A DNA stretch of 64,000 nt from Ranitomeya imitator (lineage: Eukaryota): assembly GCF_032444005.1 (NCBI RefSeq), contig NC_091288.1:16244001-16308000 (forward strand), written 5' to 3'. Under the pieces are notes generated by a model. The model was not told the DNA's origin. It worked only from the letters and a program-made list of their open reading frames with translations, and searched no databases. Positions 1,798-53,745 of the stretch are shown here, piece by piece; the first letter of the stretch is position 1, and each line of letters starts with the position of its first letter. The position numbers were made by a program, and so were the translations under genes.

Positions 1798-2531
1798 CTA
1801 TCACTGTAATTTTAGTGACCCACAGAAAACAAATATGTCGCTTATACCTCATGGTGATAGGGATAATATTTCAATAAAAAAAATTTTTTTGTAGAATTGC
1901 TGTTTTTCCATTCCTTTCTTTGCAAAATGTGAATTCAAGTTTTTCAATACTTTATATAAAACCAGAATATGGTAATTAAAAAACAACAAGCCGTAAAGAA
2001 AATTAAATTATGGCTCTTGGTGATGAAGCTCCGGATTTCAATACAATCATCTGATGGTGGATCTTATTTCATCTTGGAGAATTATTGCGCCGTCTTGAAT
2101 AATAATTAAGTTAATGATGCTAAATTGTAAACAAATCAAACAATATTAAAAGCTAAAAAAAAGTGTAAAAATAAACAATGGTCTTTGTTTTCACTGTTCT
2201 TGTGATGTTTTTCCTTTTGTGACTTGCTCATATTTTGTGGAAGTAATGGCAGTGGAGCCTTCTGTATGAAATAAAAACTACATTTCACCATTAAGCAACA
2301 GCATTGAAAAATTAAAATGTTTGCTCTGAAAACAAAGTGACAAAACGCCAATGACAATGGAAGGGATTTTCCGTGTGGCTATTCTGCTGTATGGGAAAAA
2401 TCTGTTTACTCTGCTTCTATATGACGTAATAAAAGTTGTCTGTAGTGAAAATGAAAGGAACTTTTTCTGCACAGAATATCAACAAGGCGTCAGAATAACT
2501 TGGACAGGTAACAACTCCTGTAGACTGGACG

Positions 2532-3193
2532 ATGATCTGGCTTCTGAAGCTCTTGTTGGTACTGGAAACAATTCAAGTGAGGCTAAAGAAGATAAAGAGA
2601 AGGACCAGGAACAATCCATGTTTTCTGAGTAAAGATGAGATAAAAGAAGCCGAAGAAGCTAAAGAACGAACCCAACGACTTTTAACTGATGCGCTGAAGA
2701 AAAAGGAAAGTCTCCTGGTGGAAGATCCCAAGGTGTTTGGAGACCTAAATTTAGAGAAGCTTTATCCATTCCTCACCACAGATGTGGTGGAGGAGCTGAT
2801 CCGAGAACTAGAGAAGGTGACGTTTGCAAAAAATAAAGATCCTAAGCAAGATATTGGAACTGTTGCGTATGTATACCGCGGCTCTGAAGATAGAACTATC
2901 TACCTATGTGAACTATTTTGGATAATGGATCCAAAATTTAAATTCCAACAAGACACAATCATCCACGAGGTTTGCCACATTCTTGGTTATGGTCATACAG
3001 TCCAGGAGAACAGTGACCGAGTGCAGAAGTCTCCACAGTCTATGTTGTGCCCTCAGACCACTTACTCAGTGGCTTCAGCCCTGACATCATCCATGGATCA
3101 TCCTGGAACCTTCACAGACGGCTCCTACTCCTGCTGTGGTGAGACCTCCCGGGACACCGTGTGCGAGAAATCCTGGATCTGTAACCACATCAG
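2532..3193 (+). CDS. Zinc metalloprotease-like protein, copy 1, protease exon (M35-like N-terminal region, HEVCHILGYGH motif)
   Basis: 221-aa ORF with AYVY...IYLCELFW...QDTIIHEVCHILGYGH (motif at 2964-2996) and GSYSCCGETS...VCE. Upstream acceptor TTTTTCTGCACAG at 2474; donor ATCAG|GTAGGT at 3193/3194. Confidence 0.8.
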
Positions 3194-3858
3194 GTAGGTG
3201 TCACATATTTATGTATTTCTAGACAGTATAATGTCTAGTGATTTACTGATCTACTGCAAATTGCCATAAAGAGGAAAGAGCGGAGCAAGTTGGTTACATC
3301 TACAGGGTGATGAGTAGTTTTTCCCTCATATGGGGCAAAGTTTAATTTTACTACCCTCGATCTATATCTAAATACCCTGACCAGGATGCTGACACCCAGA
3401 ATCCGGAGTATATTGGGTATATAAACAATGGGAGGGAATGTATAGAATGTATAATACATGTGGCATAACTATTGGCTGTCTGTGCACCAGAAAATTAAGT
3501 CTAAAGCAGCTCTTGATTTTACATACTTTCTCATGTAAGTGATTCCTCTGTGCTTGGAGAGACCAAGCTCAATTTTGTTAAATCCTCAATTTTATTAATT
3601 TTTTTACAAAAGTAACACAAAGGGCAAAAAGTTGAAATTTTTGACCATACCTGTCTTGTGGCAAATTTTGGAACCGGTTTATGATAAATAATAAATATCC
3701 CTCTTTGTGTTTCTACAAGTGAATCTGAGACTAAATAGTAGCTCCGTAGCTTATAAACGCGGCTGCTGAAATTTACTCACTCCCTAGATTCAGATACAAA
3801 AGTAAAAGGTCAGGAGAACAACTAGGTCTCAAGTAAGGGCAAATTATCAGGAGAGTAA

Positions 3859-4214
3859 GGCTAGGTTCACATTGCGTTAGGGCAATCCGTTTAGCGCAGA
3901 GCGCTAGCGGATTGCGCTAATGCAATGTCTCTAGAGGGATCGTGTTTGCCGATCCCGCTAGCGCAGATACCCAATCTGCGCTAGCAAGGAACGAACCTCG
4001 GACGCTGCAAGCAGCGTCCAAGGTCCGTCCGAAAATAACGGCACATAGATAGCGTATGCCGAAAATGGCATGCGCTAGCGATGCGCTAGAGATTAAAACC
4101 ACATTGCCATCAATGGGTGCGCTAACGGACCCGTTGCATGGCATTAATTGCGACAATTTCGCCGTGTAACGGAGTCTGCTAGCGTTAACCCATAAACGCA
4201 ATGTGAATCTAGCC
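3859..4214. mobile_element. PIF/Harbinger (Tourist-like) MITE
   Basis: TIRs GGCTAGGTTCACATTGCGTT / AACGCAATGTGAATCTAGCC, flanked on both sides by TAA (3856-3858, 4215-4217). Confidence 0.85.
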
Positions 4215-4289
4215 TAAGATCTGATTTTTAACCTTGCATCTAACTAATTTGATAATTTTATTTTTTTTATTTTTATTATTATGTATCAG

Positions 4290-5199
4290 GTTGGTGAAGT
4301 TGATGCACAAAGTAGAACGTCTGTGGAAACAAATATTGCTGGTGCCGAGATGTCCTGCTGGTGACGAGACTGATACTACCAGTGATGATACAGATGCTCC
4401 GGTAGAAGAGATGGGGGCAGATACTTGTAGCGTAAAGACAGAATTTTCTTTTGAAGATCCGGATATATCTGATGATGAGATAGATGAGGAGCAGACAGAT
4501 ATTGTTATGCAGATGGTAAAGAGATGGACGACTCTGGTGAAAACTCAGTACAGTCTGTTGAAGACACAAACCAATTTGTTAGAGAAGCAGAAAGATCTGA
4601 TGAAACAAATCAATCTATTGAAGACGCAGAGAAATCTATTGAAGACGCAGAGAAATCTATTGAAGACGAAGAGAAATCTATTGAAGACGCAAAGAAATCT
4701 ATTGAAGACACAGAGAAATCTATTGACGCAGAGAAATCTATTGAAGACACAGAGAAATCTATTGAAGACACAGAGAAATCTATTGAAGACACAGAGAAAT
4801 CTATTGAAGACACAGAGAAATCTATTGAAGACACAGAGAAATCTATTGACGCAGAGAAATCTATTGAAGACACAGAGAAATCTATTGACGCAGAGAAATC
4901 TGTTGAAGACACAGAGAAATCTATTGAAGACGCAGAGAAATCTGTTAATGGCACAGGATAATGTTTTGAAGAAAAAGGACAATATGGAGAAGACACTGGT
5001 CGATATTTTTGAGACACAGTTCGATATGTTGGAGACACAGGTCAATGTGGCGAAAACAGAGGCGGATGTGGTGAACACCCTGAGCGATATACTGAAGACA
5101 CTGGCCGATGTGTTGGAGACACAGTGTGTGTGGAAACGTAGGCTGTTATGGTTTAGGTACAGGATGAGGTTTTGGACCAAGTATGGGGCAGAGAATTGA
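4290..5199 (+). CDS. Copy 1 second exon: acidic linker plus heptad-repeat coiled-coil tail
   Basis: T-rich acceptor ...ATGTATCAG|GTTGG at 4289/4290, phase 2 and in frame with the copy 1 donor. Open to TGA at 5199. Could alternatively be a separate ORF from ATG 4303. Confidence 0.65.
4611..4945 (+). repeat. Coding 21-bp tandem repeat (LLKTQRN x16)
   Basis: Unit AATCTATTGAAGACACAGAGA. Three units are 18 bp (LLTQRN), so the frame is preserved. Confidence 0.95.
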
Positions 5200-8100
5200 A
5201 ATAATGGCCCCACATTCAGAAAAAAATACACTAGAATCTCAGTGACTTAAAAAAATTTACTTTTAAAGGGTTAAGTGTCCTGTTGTGCCATAATAAAGAG
5301 GTTAAAACAATATCATGATTTTACTACTACATGTTCTGTACACGACTGATGTTATAATCAGATCAGGGATACGACAATCGATGACCTTTATGACTATTTA
5401 CATATAGTAATTATTAATACAATCCACTTATCATTTGCAGCCTGGAAGCCAACAAGAACTTGATTTTGGTTGACAAAAAAGGCTGACACTTGTAGTTATT
5501 ATTTTTAGTTTATAAACCAAATAAATTAAAATTGTTCTTCTCAGTTTCTGTATTTTTCCTAATAACAATAAAAAAAATTATTATCCAACAAGAGGATAAA
5601 CCGCACTCCTGACTTTGGAAGAAAATATAGAATAGACTTTATTTAATTAATCAGTATCTCACAAAGCATTGTAGCATTGCGGGAATGTTTTCAGACTGAT
5701 GAAGGTCCTTCTTCAGGCTCTATGAGGAGGAATAAGGACAGCCTTGCCTCCCATTTATTTCCACACTACTTCTGGGTAAGAAGGATAGAATTGGGCTTAA
5801 ATATTTATACAATCAGATACAATTTTGAAAACTCTGGTCCAGACTGATTTTCTATGTGATACGTGAAGGATGTGAGTGATCAGCGATGTATCGGCCATTA
5901 CGTAATAAAGGAGAAATGTCAAAGGTCTAAAATATGACTATACAAGATGCCACTAAGTAGTGAAAAAAAAATACTTTATAAAAGAGGATAAACGAATTTG
6001 CAAGGAAATGGACATCCCAGATTCTCTCCTGGCTGATGTTAAATTCCTATATGGTTTGGCAGACTCCACTCCTGAACAATTGGGTAGGGACCGTTCATTG
6101 AGTTAAAAGAAAAAAGTTAAAAAAATGCCCCCAGCACAAAGTGATCAATCCACCATTGACATCTTTGTGGAGTTGGTAACCAGAGATCTGGAGAGATTGG
6201 AGACCGAAACCAAAAGTGGAAAGTACAATTTATCCAGATCTGAAATAGAAGTCTTAAAGATGTTGGAAATACGGTCATCATGAACCAGGGAGATTATGTA
6301 GCTATGTGTCAAAAAATCCTGAATGAACGTAGAGATTATGAGAAATTATCCTCCAATCCCACTGCTAAGTATGTTAAACAACTCAAAGGGATCCTAGACA
6401 GGGGTTTGGAAGACTCCCTAATTGATAAAAATGAGTATGATTTTCTCTTTCCACAGTACCCAGTAATGGCAACCTTTTATTGTCTTCCAAAGGTGCATAA
6501 AGGTCTGACACCACTAAAGGGGAGACCTATAGTATCAGGGATTAACAGCCTGTGTCATCATGTAGGAATGTATCTAGATGTAATTTTGAAACCCCATGTT
6601 GTCTCGCTCAACTCCTATACAAGAGATTCCAATGACCTCTTGAGGAAATTGGACGATTTAGTTCTGGAACCAGAAGCCCTTTTTGTGTAGTATTGATGTG
6701 GAGGCTCTCTACTCATCCATCAATCATGGGGATGGTCTGAGGGCAGTGGAGTATTTCATTAGGAGTATAGGTCAACAATATACAAGACACAACAAATGGG
6801 TATTAGATCTATTGGAGTTTTGTTTGACAAAAACATCTTTTTGTTTGATGGCACAGTCCACCACCAGCTCAGGGGCACAGCGATGGGCAATTCTTGTGCG
6901 CCTATGTACGCTAATTTTCTCCTGGGCTGGTGGGAGAAGACTATCGTTTTTGGGGAATCATTTATCGAAGAACAGACCAAAATTTTCTTTTGGTCGAGAT
7001 ACATCGATGATGTGCTATTAGTGTGGAATGGGGATGTCACAAGCTTTACCACCTTTGTGTTAAAATTAAATGACAACCCTTTGGGATTACGCTTCACTTG
7101 TGAACATCATGAGAACCAATTACCCTTCCTATATCTGTGCATACAAAAGATGCCGGATGGTCATATCAATACCAAAACATACAGAAAACCAACTTCCACA
7201 AATGCCCTCCTCCGGTGGGACAGCCACCACCCCGTGCCCCTGAAAAAAGGTATCCCTAAGGGACAATATTTGAGGGCACAGCGGAATTGTTCATCCATGC
7301 AGGATTATCGTGACCAAGCAGATGATTTGTGACTACAATTCCTAGATAGGGGTTACCCTGATGGCATTTTGAGGAAAGCATTTAAGGAAGTTGAAAAGGT
7401 GAGCAGAAACAATCTCCTGGTACCAACTCCCAAAAAAGATGACATACCAAAATGTAGGTATATTACAACTTTTAATAATGGTGCACAGCAGATCTGGGCT
7501 ATTTTACAAAAACATTGGTCCATCCTTCATATGGATGAGGACATTGGAGAAATAGTTGGAAAATGCCCTAGCATCACTTTTCAGAAAGGAAAATCTATAG
7601 ATGACAGATTGGTACACAGCCACTACACCGCACCAAGAAAGGAAACCTGGCTTTCCAATCAATCCAAAGGATGCTATAAATGCAGTGGCTGTGTGGCATG
7701 TCCTGTTCTAGCAATAGGATCAAACTTCAGGAGTGAAAGAACTGGAAAAGAATATCTGTTTTATCACTTTATAAATTGTGGAACGAAGGGAGTGATATAT
7801 AGAGCTGTGTGCACCTGCGGTCTTGAATATATAGGCAAAACTATAAGGGAATTCAGAAGACGAGTAGGAGAGCATCTGAGAGATATCACCCTAAAAAGAG
7901 ACACTCCATTAGCTAAACATATGAATGCCAAACATTATGGTAAGAGCTGTGATTTGAGGTTTATGGGAATCGATAAGGTCATTCCACCAAGGAGGGGTGG
8001 AAATTGGGACCAGATATTGTTACAACGTGAGACAAAATGGATTCATCGTCTGAAAACACAAACACCTGGAGACTTTAATGAGATTTTCACCTACAGCTGT

Positions 8101-9112
8101 TTTCTTTGACATCTTAGGGTAAACCATTATTTCATAAACCCTGCGCACCATTCTGCCCTTCCTTCCCCCTCTTTGTTTCTATTAAGGGTTATGTAGGGCA
8201 TATACAGGGCTAGCAATCGTGGAATGGGGGCGCCATCTCTCGTGTATCTATCCGTAGGGTGCCAACCTCCATTGATAGGTAGGGTACAGCCGGTAGGAGT
8301 TTTGGAGGGAAATGCTGATATCCTACACACTTTTCTTCTTCTCGTTGTCTTCCTTCCATTCACTTATAACGTTTGGCATTCATACAACTTTATACCATTT
8401 CTCCAAAAGCATAAAATTTTGATCCCAATTACCCTCATCGGTGCCCTAATTGTGGAGCGGAGTCTGCTGTGATCATCATTTTCATTTTTTTTCGAGAGTA
8501 CAATGCATTTTTTCTGAGAGTACAACTATTGCTTTAAGAGTATAATGATTAAAATTTAGGAATGTGATCTTTAATTTTTCCCCTTTTATTTACTTTACCA
8601 GCAAATGCCTTGACATTCTGGCCCTCCTTCCTTTATGGAGGTTTAGATAGGATCTTTTCTTGGAGAATTGAAACTACTGTTTGTAATAGAAAACACCCGT
8701 TTTTCTGGCGACTGGACCTTGAGGGGTTATTTTTATTCAAGTATGTCCCTGGCCCGGCACAGAGTTCTAATTACGCTCTAGTATGTCCATGCGCTGCATA
8801 GTATGCCTATGGGAAGAGAGGCTTGCGGCTCACTTATGCGTTCCAGAAGAGAGGCGCATGAGCTGGACACTATAGTTACAGGAAGGGACGCAAGCATTCC
8901 ATGAGAGAGGCACATAGGATATGATGTTGGCACGTCCTAGGACAAGTGCGCATAGGAAATTACGTCAGAACACTTGAAACACGAGGATCTGGTGGTGGTC
9001 TATTTAACCGGCGGCACTACAGTAGGTATGAGATACCACATTATTCCCCCATTTGCATCATGGGTGTCCACTTGGTATGACGGATGGAGACCCGACTTTT
9101 CCTTCAACAATA

Positions 9113-26263: not shown

Positions 26264-27916
26264 CAGTTAGGGCCAGAAATATTTGGACAGTGACACAATT
26301 TTTGCGAGTTGGGCTCTGCATGCCACCACATTGGATTTGAAATGAAACCTCTACAACAGAATTCAAGTGCAGATTGTAACGTTTAATTTGAAGGGTTGAA
26401 CAAAAATATCTGATAGAAAATGTAGGAATTGCACACATTTCTTTACAAACACTCCACATTTTAGGAGGTCAAAAGTAATTGGACAAATAAACATAACCCA
26501 AACAAAATATTTTTATTTTCAATATTTTGTTGCAAATCCTTTGGAGGCAATCACTGCCTTAAGTCTGGAACCCATGGACATCACCAAACGCTGGGTTTCC
26601 TCCTTCTTAATGCTTTGCCAGGCCTTTACAGCCGCAGCCTTCAGGTCTTGCTTGTTTGTGGGTCTTTCCGTCTTAAGTCTGGATTTGAGCAAGTGAAATG
26701 CATGCTCAATTGGGTTTAGATCTGGAGATTGACTTGGCCATTGCAGAATGTTCCACTTTTTGGCACTCATGAACTCCTGGGTAGCTTTGGCTGTATGCTT
26801 GGGGTCATTGTCCATCTGTACTATGAAGCGCCGTCCAATCAACTTTGCAGCATTTGGCTGAATCTGGGCTGAAAGTATATCCCGGTACACTTCAGAATTC
26901 ATCCGGCTACTCTTGTCTGCTCTTATGTCATCAATAAACACAAGTGACCCAGTGCCATTGAAAGCCATGCATGCCCATGCCATCACGTTGCCTCCACCAT
27001 GTTTTACAGAGGATGTGGTGTGCCTTGGATCATGTGCCGTTCCCTTTCTTCTCCAAACTTTTTTCTTCCCATCATTCTGGTACAGGTTGATCTTTGTCTC
27101 ATCTGTCCATAGAATACTTTTCCAGAACTGAGCTGGCTTCTTGAGGTGTTTTTCTGCAAATTTAACTCTGGCCTGTCTATTTTTGGTATTGATGAATGGT
27201 TTGCATCTAGATGTGAACCCTTTGTATTTACTGTCATGGAGTCTTCTCTTTACTGTTGACTTAGAGACAGATACACCTACTTCACTGAGAGTGTTCTGGA
27301 CTTCAGTTGATGTTGTGAACGGGTTCTTCTTCACCAAATTAAGTATGCGGCGATCATCCACCACTGTTGTCATCCGTGGACGCCCAGGCCTTTTTGAGTT
27401 CCCAAGCTCACCAGTCAATTCCTTTTTTCTCAGAATGTACCCAACTGTTGATTTTGCTACTCCAAGCATGTCTGCTATCTCTCTGATGGATTTTTTCTTT
27501 TTTTTTCAGCCACAGGATGTTCTGCTTCACCTCAATTGAGAGTTCCTTTGACCACATGTTGTCAGCCCACAGCAACAGCTTCCAAATGCAAAACCACACA
27601 CCTGGAATCCACCCCTGACCTTTTAACTACTTCATTGATTACAGGTTAACGAGGGAGACCCCTTCAGAGTTAATTGCAGCCCTTAGAGTCCATTGTCCAA
27701 TTACTTTTGGTCCCTTGAAAAAGAGGACGCTATGCATTACAGAGCTATGATTCCTAAACCCTTTCTCCGATTTGGATGTGGAAACTATCATATTGCAGCT
27801 GGGAGTGTGCACTTTCAGCACATATTATATATATAATTGTATTTCTGAACATGTTTTTGTAAACAGCTAAAATAACAAAACTTGTGTCACTGTCCAAATA
27901 TTTCTGGCCCTAACTG
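26264..27916 (-). mobile_element. Near-complete Tc1 transposon (1653 bp)
   Basis: TIR CAGTTAGGGCCAGAAATATTTGGACAGTGACACA at both ends, TA flanks inside a (TA)n tract. Confidence 0.95.
26519..27557 (-). pseudogene. Tc1 DD34E transposase with one N-terminal frameshift
   Basis: 316-aa ORF 26519-27469 with WTDETK, MDNDPKH and SPDLNPIE. The N-terminal MWSKELSIEVKQ lies in another frame across the poly-T run near 27490-27508. Confidence 0.85.
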
Positions 27917-28671: not shown

Positions 28672-29336
28672 ATGATGTCCTGGCTTCTGAAGCTCTTGTT
28701 GGTACTGGAAATGATTAAAGTGAGGCCAAAGAAGATACAGAGAAGGATCATGAACAATCCATGTTTTCTGAGTAAAGATGAGATAAATGAAGCCGAAGAA
28801 GCTAAAGAACGAACCCAACGACTTTTATCTGATGCTCTGAAGAAAAAGGAAAGTCTCCTGGTGGAAGATCTGAAGGTGTTCGAAGACATGACCTTAAAGA
28901 CGCTTTATCCATTCATCACCACGGATCTAGTGAACGAGCTGATGCGAGAACTAGAGAAGGTGACGTTTGCAAAAAATAAATATCCTGTAAAAGATATTGG
29001 AGTTAACGCGTATGTATACCCCGGGTCTGACGATAGAACCATCCATCTATGTGCACCATTTTTTAAAATGGATCCAAAATCTAAATCCCAAGAAAGAACC
29101 ATTATCCACGAGGTTTCCCACTTTCTTGGTTATGGTCACACAGTCCAGAAGAACAGTGACAGAGTGAAGATGTCACCACAGTCCATGTTGTGTCCTCAGA
29201 CGACTTACTCTGTGGCTTCAGCCCTGACATTGGACATGGACCATCGAGGACCCTTCACAGATGGCTCCTACTCCTGCTGTGGTGAGACCTCCCGGGACAC
29301 CGTGTGTGAGAAATCCTGGGCTTGTAAGTACATAAG
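28672..29336 (+). CDS. Zinc metalloprotease-like protein, copy 2, protease exon (HEVSHFLGYGH)
   Basis: Intact ORF about 79% identical to copy 1 (hand count); motif at 29107-29139. Acceptor at 28613; phase-2 donor ATAAG|GTTGGT at 29336/29337. The unspliced frame stops at 29349. Confidence 0.8.
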
Positions 29337-30609
29337 GTTGGTGACATAAATTTCCATACAGTATATAGTTGGCTCCTATATATGTGCCCTATTTCATTCT
29401 TTTCCTTAGCTATGGTGGGCATACTTTCAAAGTTATGTTTGGCAGAAGTGTGACATAAGAAGGAGCGACGGTTCTGTGTTGTTTAGTTACTGTTTTTTTC
29501 CCCACTACTTTATTGTTAATCTTTGCACCTACAATTTTGAGACCGGAGAAACGTCCAGCGCTTGGTTTTATTTTCTGTATATGTTCAAAAGGAAATGAAA
29601 TAAAATAATAATACAATAATAAAATAAATATATAATATACAAGTATAAAATATAAAATATATCATCTAAATAAAGTAAACAAAATAATATTTAGAAAAAA
29701 AAAAAGTATGGTAATTTTATAGTTGCCAACTGCCGTGGAAATTACTGTGACTCTAGGACTAAATGGAGTTTATGCAAACCCCACCCAAAACAGGGAGCTA
29801 CAGGTGCTTTCCAAGATCGTTGGGGCTTTCCTGGGAGCTGGGAGATTGGGGTGGGACTTAAATGTCTGCAGAAATGTTGGCAATTATGTAACTTACTAAT
29901 TTATGGTTAATAATTGTGATCAGTAATACAAAAAACAAAAAAACACAATACTATCACCATAAGTGCCAGTATTCACAGGAGATCTGTACTTAGTATGCAG
30001 TGTCTGTGTAGAGGTAATACAGAGATCACTGGTGACATTATACACAGGACCTCTATATAGTATACAGTGTATAGTGTCAGTGTATAGGTAACACTGACTC
30101 ACCAGTGACGTCTCTAGGTGAAGTCCTTCATCTTTCATCCAGCACAGACCGCCATAATTTCTTCCAGCCAGGACTCGTTTCTGCAGGAAATAACACAGTT
30201 ATTTCAAGCTCCGCTTGCAGAACACATTACTTAATTTTTCACAACTTCTACATTACACCACATGAAGAAAAAAAGGCGATATAGTGTCACTCTGCACAGT
30301 AACAGGACCGCCCCCCCATTTAAAACAGTATACTCAAAAAATAAAATAAATACATCGCTGCAGTAATAATATCCCTTAATTAGCCCCTATGGTAATATTC
30401 CCCATCCTGGCCCCGTGTGTCTCATTCCTGGCTCCAGCCATATGTTCTCGCATCCTGCCCTCATGAGTATCCATTCTACACCATATGATCTCCCCATCCT
30501 GCCCCATCTGTCTCCATCGTATCCATCCTGCCCCATGATCCAATCCTGCCCCATGTCTTTCATTCTGCCCCGTGTCTCCAATCATGCCCCGTGTCTACAT
30601 TCTGCCCAT

Positions 30610-31545
30610 GCCTCCAGTCCTGCCCCCAGTGTGTCCAGCAATCTGCCCCAGTGTGTCCAGCATATTACCCCTAGTGTGTCCAGCATATTACCCCCAGTGT
30701 GTCCAGCATATTACCCCCAGTGTGTCCAGCAACCTGCCCCAGTATGTCCAGCATATTGCCCCAGTGTCCAGCAATCTGCCCCAGTGTCCAGCATTGCCCC
30801 AGCGTGTCCAGCAATCTGCCCCAGTGTGTCCAGCATATTACCCCCAGTGTGTCCAGCATATTACCCCCAGTGTGTCCAGCAATCTGCCCCAGTATGTCCA
30901 GCTTATTGCCCCAGTGTCCAGCAATCTGCCCCAGTGTGTCTAGCATTGCCCCCAGACAGTGTCTCCAGCAATCTGCCCCAGTGTCTGACTCCAGCATATT
31001 GCCCCCATTGTGTCCAGCAATCTGCCCCAGTGTGTCCAGCAATCTGCCCCAGTGTGTCCAGCATATTACCCCCAGTGTGTCCAGCAATCGGCCCCAGTAT
31101 GTCCAGCATATTGCCCCAGTGTGTCCAGCATTGCCCCCAGACAGTGTGTCCAGCAATCTGCCCCAGTGTGTCCAGCATATTACCACCAGTGTGTCCAGTA
31201 ATCTGCCCCAGTGTCTCCAGCATTGCTCCAGTGTCTCCAGCATTGCCCCAGTGTCTCCAGCAATCATCTGCCCTAGTGTGTCCTCCAGCATTGCCCCAGT
31301 GTGTCCAGCAGTCTTCCCCAGTGTCTCCAGCATTACCCCAGTGTGTCCAGCATTGCCCCAGTGTCTCCAGCAATCTGCCCCAGTGTGTCCTCCAGCATTG
31401 CCCCCAGTGTGTCCATCAATCTGCCCCAGTGTCTCCAGCATTGCCCCAGTGTCTCCATCATTGCCCAAGTGTGTCCAGCAATCTGCCCCAGTGTGTCCAG
31501 CAATCTGCCCCAGTGTGTCCAGCAATCTGCCCCAGTGTGTCCACC
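30610..31545. repeat. C-rich minisatellite (~20-24 bp units, CCCCAGTGTGTCCAGCAATCTG) inside a repeat element (~29900-31886)
   Basis: Direct tandem repetition with unit variants. Confidence 0.9.
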
Positions 31546-31890
31546 ATTAGCTTACCAAAAAAAAAAAAAAGAGTCTCCTCACCTGACCTGGCACTCCAGC
31601 GCTGAGCTCCCTCCAGCAGTGCACACTCGCCGGCGACTGACAATGACGTCAGACGCCGGCGACGTGTGCGCTGCGGCCGACATCAGCCGCCAGCCTCCAA
31701 TTGGCTGGCAGCTGTTGTTGTTAACTATTGACGTGCGGGCGCGCGGCCGCACGTCAATAGGAAAGCGCCGCAGCGCCGGAAGGGGCCCGGTGAGCAGACG
31801 AGACGGGGCCTGATGCGGGCACCCTCTCTCTGCCCACCGGGTCCGGGAACACATAAATGTCAGCGGGCAGTGGGCATTCACCACCACACT

Positions 31891-32479: not shown

Positions 32480-32837
32480 AGAGATGTCCCGGAAGAACCC
32501 GTGGAGACATATGGGAAGATACAGAAACCTCTGAAGAAAAGACTCTACCAGAAAGCAGACAAGTACTGATACTCGGCCGGCGCACAGATTCATGTCTCAG
32601 GTGAAAAGACACATAGATCTGTTAAAGACGCAAAACAATTTGTTGAAGAAGCAGAAAAATCTGATTAAGAAACAAAACAATCTGATGAAGGGAAATGGTG
32701 CTGTTGTGAAGAAAAAGGCTGATATGGTGAAGCTACTGGCCAGTATGGTGGCGACAAAGGCTGATATGGTAAAAACACTGGCCAGTATGGTGAAGATAAA
32801 GGTGGATAGGGTGAAAAAAATGTTGATGTTTCCATGA
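32480..32837 (+). pseudogene. Copy 2 second exon: short heptad-repeat tail with a premature stop
   Basis: Acceptor TTTTTTTTTGGTTAATAG at 32479, phase 2 and in frame with MSQVKRHIDLLKTQNNLLKKQKNL..., which resembles the copy 1 tail. In-frame TGA at 32532-32534. Confidence 0.6.
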
Positions 32838-34127
32838 AGACTCTTCAAAGATGCTGACACCTGCAGTTATCATTTTAGATTGTAAACCAAATAAATTAGC
32901 ATTGTTCATCTGTGACTGTACATTTTTTCTAAAAGGAATAATATAATAATTACTTTTTTTTTTCAATAGTCTTTGACTTGAAAAGCAACATTGCAGCAAT
33001 GCTTCAGGCTGATGAAGCCTAGCAGAAGGATGGAAGGATGGGGAGCTGAGCAAGATAAGTCTGCACTTTGGCTAGCTATTAGTGGGGGTGAGTAGTACTC
33101 AGTTTACATGGTTCCCAGGGCTATAGTGAAGGCCACAGAGGAGGTGAGACAGCGTGCAGCTACCATTTATGTGCCAGCTGCAGTAGCGTAGCTACCGGGG
33201 GCAGAGGGTGTGACCGCCTCAGGCCCTACGCTCTGAGGGGGCCCACCTGGAGCTACACTACTGTAACTGCATCGGCACGCGCAATCTCCCTGCTCTGCCG
33301 CTATAGGGCTCCTAAGCAGGCGAGGGGGTCCGGTGCCAGCAGTGGGCCCCCCGCCTGTCATCGTAAGGTCAGCTGTATCGGCATCTAGCTGATACAGCTG
33401 ACCGCAGTGATGAGGGAAGGAGCGCTGCGCTCCTTCTCCCATCATCCCCCCCATTGTCTGACAGCGGGCTCGATGATGTCACCGCCTGGCGCCCGCTGTC
33501 AGATGAGAGGGAGCAGGGAGCGCCGCTGGAACATGGAGGAAGAGAGGTGAGTATTTATTGTGTTTTTTTTTTATGGGGGTGCTGTCTTATATACAGGATC
33601 TGCCTATGGGGGGGGGTGCTGCCTTATATATAGGACCCCCCCACCCCTCTTATCAAACAAGCTGTAAAAGGCTGGAGAAGGCTTCAACCAAGTCAGGAAT
33701 GCCTTCGCCCTATATCGTTGAGACTATTCCTTCGATAATATCACAACATCACAATCTCCTTATCAGTGGCAAGTCGCTCGTATCAGCAGCCCTCGCTATC
33801 TCTTTGTTTGCAGCGCAGCGCGCATTAGTGATTTGTTACAGCGGTCAAAAAACTCAGAGTCAGAAGGCGGTTTAATCAACGAAGGACTTAGTAATTTGCA
33901 GCGACGCTCTGCGCACTCACGTATTGCGATCTCGCTGATAGAGGCACCTGGGTCTCGGTTAACTCATCCAAGGGACCAATATCGCCTCTATATAAATAAA
34001 ATTTAAAAAAATTCACGAGGCCGAAGTGCAGACAAGGGGCTGCTGTAATTCCTCATTTTTTCCCAAATAAATCACCTGACTTCCTCAAGTAACATATCTT
34101 GTCTCTTACAGGGTCTATAAACCCACA

Positions 34128-53163: not shown

Positions 53164-53745
53164 ATGGATGAAGAGCAGAGGACGGTGGCAGAAACTTCTA
53201 GAAAGGCAACTCTGAATGTCCTGACCGACGTCCACAGAAAGGGTCTCGTTGTGGATAATTCTCACCTACTGCAACCCACGGTATCGTTCCCTCTAATCTC
53301 GAGGACCCTTCTAGGAGACCTGGTAGAGAAACTGAGGACGGTGACGTTCAAGTGTGACAAAAAGCCAAGAAACGAAATTCTCTTCGCCTACCCTGCACCC
53401 CAGGACATCGTGTATCTGTGCCCCCTCTTCTGGAAACAGAAGCCTCGGTTGGACCACGGATCTCAAATTGGAACATTAATTCTCTGCGTGGCACAAATGT
53501 TGGGCTACAGACACATCCTCGATGGAACAAGTGATGCTGAGGAGCCTATGGGGGTCCGGAAAGGGACCTTACTGAGGGCCGATGACATTTGTGCTGTATT
53601 CGAAACTTGGATGAACCACCGGAAACCGTACGTGGAGGGTTCCTACTCCTGCTGCGGGGAGAACGTCCAGGACTCGGTGTGCACAGAGTCCTGCATGGGA
53701 TTACAGCTAAGGGAAAGTCTGCAGGAGGTCGACGAGAACGGCTAA
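53164..53745 (+). CDS. Metalloprotease-like family copy 4, HExxH lost, no 3' intron
   Basis: Acceptor TTCTTCCCCTTTAG at 53144 and ATG at 53164. Has YLCPLFW, SQIGTLILCVAQMLGYRH and GSYSCCGENVQDSVC; the frame is open to TAA at 53745. Confidence 0.72.
   Translation: MDEEQRTVAETSRKATLNVLTDVHRKGLVVDNSHLLQPTVSFPLISRTLLGDLVEKLRTVTFKCDKKPRNEILFAYPAPQDIVYLCPLFWKQKPRLDHGSQIGTLILCVAQMLGYRHILDGTSDAEEPMGVRKGTLLRADDICAVFETWMNHRKPYVEGSYSCCGENVQDSVCTESCMGLQLRESLQEVDENG

Follow-up and report, generated by a model that had tools for sequence, protein, structure and literature searches.

A frog family of M35/aspzincin-like zinc-peptidase domains with a histidine in the column of the aspartate zinc ligand

Gene copies and other elements at the locus

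The window analysed here is a stretch of 64,000 nucleotides from the frog Ranitomeya imitator (NC_091288.1, positions 16,244,001 to 16,308,000). It contains two similar genes, copies 1 and 2, and two paralogues, found by tblastn, whose sequences have diverged far more. The 11-residue pattern HExxHxxGxxH had been described in two copies in a preliminary description of this DNA, and both are present. Translation of copy 1 agrees with that description, HEVSHFLGYGH was found in copy 2, and these are the only two sites in the window matching a degenerate DNA pattern for the motif (0.00 expected from 100 shuffles). The features are listed below, H-type denoting domains with an intact HExxH and His at position 155.

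2532..3193 (+): exon 1 of copy 1, coding, 221 codons, with base 4290 supplying the end of the last one; aspzincin-like domain and BTK zinc knuckle
2865..2921 (+): copy 1 M35 lead-in AYVYRGSEDRTIYLCELFW, residues 112-130, aligning with residues 80-123 of GfMEP (1g12) and with AsaP1
2964..2996 (+): copy 1 HEVCHILGYGH (H145, E146, H149, G152, H155), from the pattern search and column statistics
2994..2996 (+): copy 1 codon of His155; hmmalign of 93 family and 49 classical M35 domains puts it where aspzincins have their Asp zinc ligand
3030..3047 (+): copy 1 SPQSML, proposed as a Met-turn (unsupported); Met occurs at position 171 in 15 of 26 H-type domains, and M171 is modelled as helical
3099..3164 (+): copy 1 BTK-type zinc knuckle, H190-x10-C201-C202-x8-C211, from Pfam BTK
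3194..4289 (+): copy 1 intron, GT..AG; contigs join 3193/3194 to 4290/4291
4290..5199 (+): copy 1 exon 2, an open reading frame with an acidic linker and a KTQRNLL-repeat coiled coil, to the stop codon
28672..29336 (+): copy 2 coding exon 1, with HEVSHFLGYGH at 29107-29139; Pfam M35 35.5 bits
45575..46102 (+): paralogue 3, HExxH replaced by TAAAC, third position D, BTK knuckle retained; from tblastn, alignment and tree
53188..53712 (+): paralogue 4, HExxH replaced by LCVAQ, third position H, BTK knuckle retained; from tblastn, alignment and tree

The open reading frame of copy 1 exon 1 spans 2532-3197 (+) and encodes the conserved stretch AYVY..IYLC..FW..HEVCHILGYGH, within which Y113, C126, F129 and W130 of the lead-in are conserved family-wide in the column statistics. 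The exon translation of copy 2 is 100% identical to P0001, annotated as an 'uncharacterized protein' of R. imitator. At the nucleotide level the two exons share 87% identity, and the surrounding alignment block is 90.4% identical. The overall dN/dS between the copies, 0.54, gives no signal of gene-wide positive selection.

Paralogues 3 and 4 lie 7 kb apart. They are most closely related to the first and second domains of frog proteins that carry two such domains, for example P0024 of Leptodactylus, and may therefore be two exons of a single tandem pseudo-protease gene.

Several other elements share the window. Between the two gene copies, an intact-looking Tc1/mariner transposase reading frame of 316 aa with HTH_Tnp_Tc3_2 and DDE_3 domains occupies 26522-27469 (-). 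A run of open reading frames at 6280-8109 (+), with reverse-transcriptase-like and Cys-rich endonuclease-like sequence, is possibly a decayed retroelement; Pfam returned no match to these frames at E 0.001 or better. At 30415-31605, on both strands, a long GC-rich low-complexity repeat (GC 0.54) is built of PQCVQQSAPVCPA-like units with open frames in several phases, and is probably a satellite or minisatellite, not a gene.

Transcription and splicing

Both frog genes are transcribed and spliced. RNA-like Logan contigs from four public runs cover 2526-3194 and 4290 onward and are absent from 3224-3839. Two of them (record 25 in X6 and record 12 in X15) bridge 3193/3194 directly to 4290/4291, and the reading frame runs across the spliced intron into the open reading frame ending at 5199. 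For copy 2, a loose contig end in run X2 reads as exon 1 spliced to the EMSR... exon of P0001. The runs themselves are only guessed to be RNA, and they are taken as such because the contigs are spliced. Within the copy 1 intron, the stretch 3840-4150 has a very high summed contig depth in all four runs, up to about 5000, as might be expected of a dispersed repeat expressed or abundant at other sites.

The layout of exon 1 followed by a coiled coil recurs in P0003, P0004 and P0025, and annotated Phyllobates and Ranitomeya proteins show it. Exons 1 and 2 were analysed separately, and a Pfam search of copy 1 exon 2 gave no family. Downstream of copy 2, at 32553-32891 (+), there is a coiled-coil exon-like sequence that resembles a Phyllobates C-terminal tail and contains stop codons in the tblastn alignment. 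The annotated copy 2 protein, P0001, ends in a short alternative tail and not in the coiled-coil stretch.

An M35/aspzincin fold

Against the Pfam Aspzincin_M35 (PF14521) gathering cut-off of 30 bits, the domain encoded by exon 1 scores 29.4 in copy 1, marginally too low, and 35.5 in copy 2, and family relatives score 33-59. A profile built from 16 family members (A1), searched against the PDB, matched 1g12 at E=3.3e-9 and AsaP1 at about 8e-7, and nothing else meaningful. An AlphaFold2 model built on A1 has a mean pLDDT of 85.2 and a pTM of 0.81. When this model was compared with the PDB by Foldseek, no match reached E 0.001 or better (best E 2.1e-3), and the best seven chains were all M35 enzymes, namely GfMEP, AsaP1 and deuterolysin, with probabilities of 0.89-1.00. 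For clear separation of folds, re-scoring with VIA-align was needed. Model residues 29-191 align with complete mature M35 enzymes at Z 9.9-11.0, and the runners-up are Pra1 at Z 7.0 and all others at 5.5 or less. An ESM Atlas search with the axolotl relative likewise returned M35 neighbours, mostly bacterial. As modelled, the domain of copies 1 and 2 is an M35/aspzincin fold, belonging to the M35 superfamily by descent and not to the metzincins. The M35-like scaffold that the preliminary description proposed is thus borne out by the family profile and the predicted fold.

The same description had considered the active site a hybrid, in which metzincin-style zinc ligation was combined with a possible Met-turn at SPQSML. 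The extended metzincin motif HExxHxxGxxH is matched exactly in copies 1 and 2, the active-site helix stops at the Gly in the model, and Pfam reports a faint match to Reprolysin_3 (E=0.15), all of which would suit a genuine metzincin, or a metzincin/M35 hybrid, with the third His and the Met-turn forming a metzincin active site. Against this, chains of MMP, serralysin and meprin align with the model at Z 2.6-3.5, compared with 10-11 for M35 enzymes, and have Foldseek probabilities of 0.04-0.06; moreover, close relatives of the frog proteins carry the canonical aspzincin GTxDxxY in the same columns. Among the H-type domains in which M171 is not Met, it is Lys in 7 (the ranoids, with SQQYKLCP) and another residue in 4, and the model places residues 168-172 in a short helix.

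The patchy conservation of Met, the helix and the fold result rule out a Met-turn at SPQSML, and metzincin membership is ruled out by the fold (Z 3.5 or less) and the non-conserved Met. A metzincin or hybrid origin is accordingly given next to no probability. The metzincin consensus in the frog proteins is convergent, reached via a one-residue change on an unrelated fold, because many M35 enzymes already have the spacing HExxH-xx-G-xx-D and a single D-to-H change suffices.

The third-ligand column

A search of 1.84 billion representative proteins with the A1 HMM recovered about 80 clusters of a distinct family, with E values from 1e-227 to about 1e-17. Below these, scores fall to classical M35 proteins, which match around the active site only. 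The 93 family domains and 49 classical M35 domains were aligned to the profile with hmmalign. In the classical enzymes, HExxH is followed by a spacer of 5, 6 or 8 residues and then by the Asp of GTxDxxYG; 13 classical domains in the list have the 5-residue form (HExxH-xx-GTxD-xxYG). This spacing recurs in the family's eel, Colossoma, axolotl, turtle and lizard proteins, for example HEVSH-LL-GTDD-VVY. Copy 1, reading HEVCH-IL-GYGH-TVQ, aligns with it residue for residue: G152 takes the place of the Gly, H155 that of the Asp ligand and Q158 that of the Tyr. The earlier statement that no GTxDxxYG is present is literally correct for the window copies. A homologous remnant does exist, however, and overlaps the third His: it reads G152-Y-G-H155-T-V-Q158-E, with Asp changed to His, Thr to Tyr and Tyr to Gln.

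Conservation of position 155 depends on the rest of the site. Among the 58 domains with an intact HExxH it is D in 32 (D-type) and H in 26 (H-type), and nothing else. In the 26 of 84 family domains that are dead, having lost HExxH, it is D in 7, H in 4, N, T and R in 3 each, E and Y in 2 each, and L and S in 1 each. Asp or His thus occurs in 58/58 intact against 11/26 broken domains (Fisher p=5e-10, a value that ignores shared ancestry and is only indicative). G152 is kept in 55 of the 58 intact domains and in 23 of the 26 that lost HExxH, while the catalytic Glu, E146, is kept in all 26 H-type domains. The behaviour of position 155, conserved only where HExxH is, would be expected of a metal-ligand column and is the chief argument for His-His-His ligation. 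Because the third His sits in the Asp-ligand column and is invariant there where HExxH is intact, His-His-His zinc ligation on an M35 scaffold is the best reading of the alignment, with His155 predicted to contact the zinc. Of the metzincin-style ligation put forward in the preliminary description, the placing of the third His in the ligand position therefore stands and the metzincin or hybrid ancestry does not.

Another residue, such as E159 or D162, or water might instead supply the third ligand on the aspzincin fold, leaving His155 as a structural or second-shell residue. Being larger than Asp, His may be unable to adopt the same geometry, and two nearby positions are well conserved in H-type domains, E159 being E in 20/26 and N160 being N in 22/26. 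Position 159 is nevertheless less conserved than H155 and is K or T in some active-looking domains, whereas His155 is found in 26/26; the column admits only D or H as long as HExxH is whole, and N, T, R, E, Y, S and L turn up in it once that motif is broken. A non-ligand role for His155 is considered unlikely.

A further change concerns the Tyr of GTxDxxY, present in 26/32 D-type and 0/26 H-type domains, and its loss in the latter could mean altered or lost catalysis. In keeping with this, the H-type domain might bind metal without being a peptidase, serving as a pseudo-enzyme, as a module that binds or senses zinc, or as scaffolding for the coiled-coil tail. The motif Tyr is missing in all anuran members, a cytosolic protease would here have no propeptide or other visible latency device, and dead paralogues are common and retain the BTK knuckle. 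The next structural neighbour after the M35 enzymes, Pra1, is a fungal M35-like zinc scavenger. Yet the catalytic Glu, a non-ligand residue, persists in every H-type domain across deep frog lineages, while dead paralogues lose the whole motif, and the dN/dS of copies 1 and 2 shows a sequence that is not freely drifting. This alternative is rated improbable, though a little less so than a non-ligand His155.

Zinc knuckle, N-terminus and C-terminal tails

The peptidase domain is followed by a knuckle that Pfam assigns to BTK (PF00779) in copy 1, with 24.9 bits against a cut-off of 24, and that phmmer aligns with the Tec PH-TH module 2lul. Neither Pfam nor structural alignment revealed a PH domain before the knuckle, which comes after the peptidase domain. 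Its putative ligands H190, C201, C202 and C211 show no variation in 83 of 84 domains, and the other domain has a gap. As they are invariant in active and dead domains alike, the knuckle is probably a structural zinc site needed by the fold.

At the other end, model residues 29-191 align with residues 2-167 of mature GfMEP. Since only 28 residues lie upstream of the mature-domain equivalent, copy 1 appears to lack the long propeptide of M35 zymogens. N-termini vary among paralogues.

The region after the knuckle differs between lineages, with an ApoL domain in turtle members and coiled coils in salamander and frog members. P0042, P0047, P0054 and P0063 (turtle and related) combine the aspzincin and BTK module with an Apolipoprotein L (ApoL) domain scoring up to 102 bits. 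This fusion suggests that the setting of the vertebrate family is one of membrane action or innate immunity.

Distribution and evolution

All named H-type proteins are anuran and come from Discoglossus, Pelodytes, Xenopus tropicalis and many Neobatrachia. Mammal or bird members were absent from the named matches of the family search. Public annotation names family proteins only 'uncharacterized' or 'Lysine-specific metallo-endopeptidase domain-containing'. In Pelobates cultripes, a single annotated protein, P0018 (626 aa), contains three almost identical active D-type aspzincin-BTK domains in tandem. Near the family boundary, the sole named protein from outside the vertebrates is P0078 (608 aa) of the ciliate Halteria grandinella, a weak outlying match of 77.7 bits.

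A quick and poorly resolved maximum-likelihood tree, for which the motif columns were left out, places the non-anuran domains in one clade and the anuran domains in another (support 99 for each). The non-anuran clade is entirely D-type. The anuran clade includes active domains of both kinds, H-type in Discoglossus, Pelodytes, Xenopus tropicalis and all sampled Neobatrachia and D-type in Pelobates and a Xenopus laevis group, and several dead clades. Every one of the 26 non-anuran domains has Tyr158 and no anuran domain does, and the reverse is true of Tyr153. Because this split separates anurans from non-anurans, remodelling of the site in the anuran ancestor seems to have preceded the replacement of Asp by His. 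That replacement takes one base, GAY to CAY. Parsimony counts at least 3 D/H changes on the poorly resolved tree, and a single H-type clade is not rejected (p-AU 0.52).

Proposed mechanism

The explanation that we favour, with a probability of roughly 0.6, combines a cytosolic-type M35 fold, a predicted His-His-His catalytic zinc, a BTK structural zinc and a coiled-coil tail. The protein of each gene would be cytosolic-type, without a signal-like propeptide, and its N-terminal ~190 residues would form the M35/aspzincin zinc-peptidase fold. H145 and H149 on the active-site helix are predicted to bind the catalytic zinc, with E146 as the presumed general base. The helix would stop at G152, and H155 would provide the third ligand where ordinary aspzincins use the Asp of GTxDxxYG. 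A second, structural zinc would be held by the BTK-type His-Cys3 knuckle (H190, C201, C202, C211), followed by the coiled-coil exon in frogs and by the ApoL module in turtles. The proteins of copies 1 and 2 would be expected to cleave peptides.

The suggested order of events, drawn from the family, begins at the base of the frogs, where Tyr158 would have been lost and a Tyr at 153 gained. Later within frogs, Asp155 may have become His by the single-base change, possibly only once. This step would have produced the exact HExxHxxGxxH by convergence, without a Met-turn or a metzincin fold.

More tentatively, and at odds that we put below even, the frog genes could represent a natural ligand swap in which an intracellular aspzincin passed from His-His-Asp to His-His-His early in anurans, moved its Tyr from 158 to 153 and is still an active peptidase in a tandemly expanded vertebrate effector family that also gives rise to pseudo-protease paralogues. 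An innate-immune role of the vertebrate family with aspzincin, BTK and ApoL or coiled-coil modules is possible.

Comparison with known systems

Zincins are divided into metzincins, aspzincins and gluzincins by their third ligand (PMC6043653). The M35 family is defined by HEXXH and GTXDXXYG, with His, His and Asp as ligands, and is discussed as a bacterial and fungal family (PMC12924839). A literature search on vertebrate M35 or Aspzincin_M35 (PF14521) proteins found no paper, and the vertebrate family appears to be unstudied. It deserves notice: the literature treats M35 as bacterial and fungal only. Its architecture is unusual in that it lacks a propeptide and adds a BTK knuckle and a tail of ApoL or coiled-coil type.

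One of the closest counterparts is GfMEP, the peptidyl-Lys metalloendopeptidase of Grifola frondosa (1g12/1ge6, MEROPS M35), whose whole mature enzyme resembles the frog domain at Z 10.5-10.6 with 126-134 residues aligned. Both have the lead-in AYVYP..IYLC..FW..GTxxHExxH, with HExxH on the active-site helix. In GfMEP, Asp130 of GTKDYAYG follows a spacer of 8 residues, whereas the frog domain has its His after a spacer of 5 and has lost the motif Tyr. GfMEP is secreted with a propeptide. In contrast, the frog protein begins about 28 residues before the mature-domain equivalent and adds the BTK knuckle and the coiled coil. AsaP1 of Aeromonas salmonicida (2x3a/2x3b/2x3c) gives the best Z, 11.0, and deuterolysin of Aspergillus oryzae (1eb6) gives 9.9. 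Unlike the frog protein, both are secreted microbial enzymes with propeptides and Asp ligation.

The D-type vertebrate relatives, found in eel, Colossoma, axolotl, turtles and lizards as well as in Pelobates and Xenopus laevis, have the same aspzincin and BTK architecture and score 115 to 379 bits with the family profile, far above classical M35. They keep the Asp at 155 and, outside frogs, also the Tyr of GTxDxxY; in turtle members, ApoL takes the place of the frog coiled coil. The knuckle shares the H-x10-CC-x8-C spacing of the Tec kinase BTK motif (the Tec-homology zinc knuckle), but in Tec kinases it comes after a PH domain and in the frog proteins after the peptidase domain.

Metzincins such as astacins, MMPs, serralysins and adamalysins resemble the frog domain in HExxHxxGxxH and in a helix broken at Gly. 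They differ in fold, in having the conserved Met-turn that the frog domain lacks, and in showing no sequence-profile relationship to it. The metzincin consensus alone is therefore not enough to place a protein in a clan. Zincin clans are defined by which residue is the third ligand and where it lies, and the frog family appears to have exchanged that residue while keeping its fold. Its members would thus act like aspzincins with a substituted ligand, and the matched natural D-type and H-type domains offer a way to study how ligand identity tunes zinc-peptidase chemistry.
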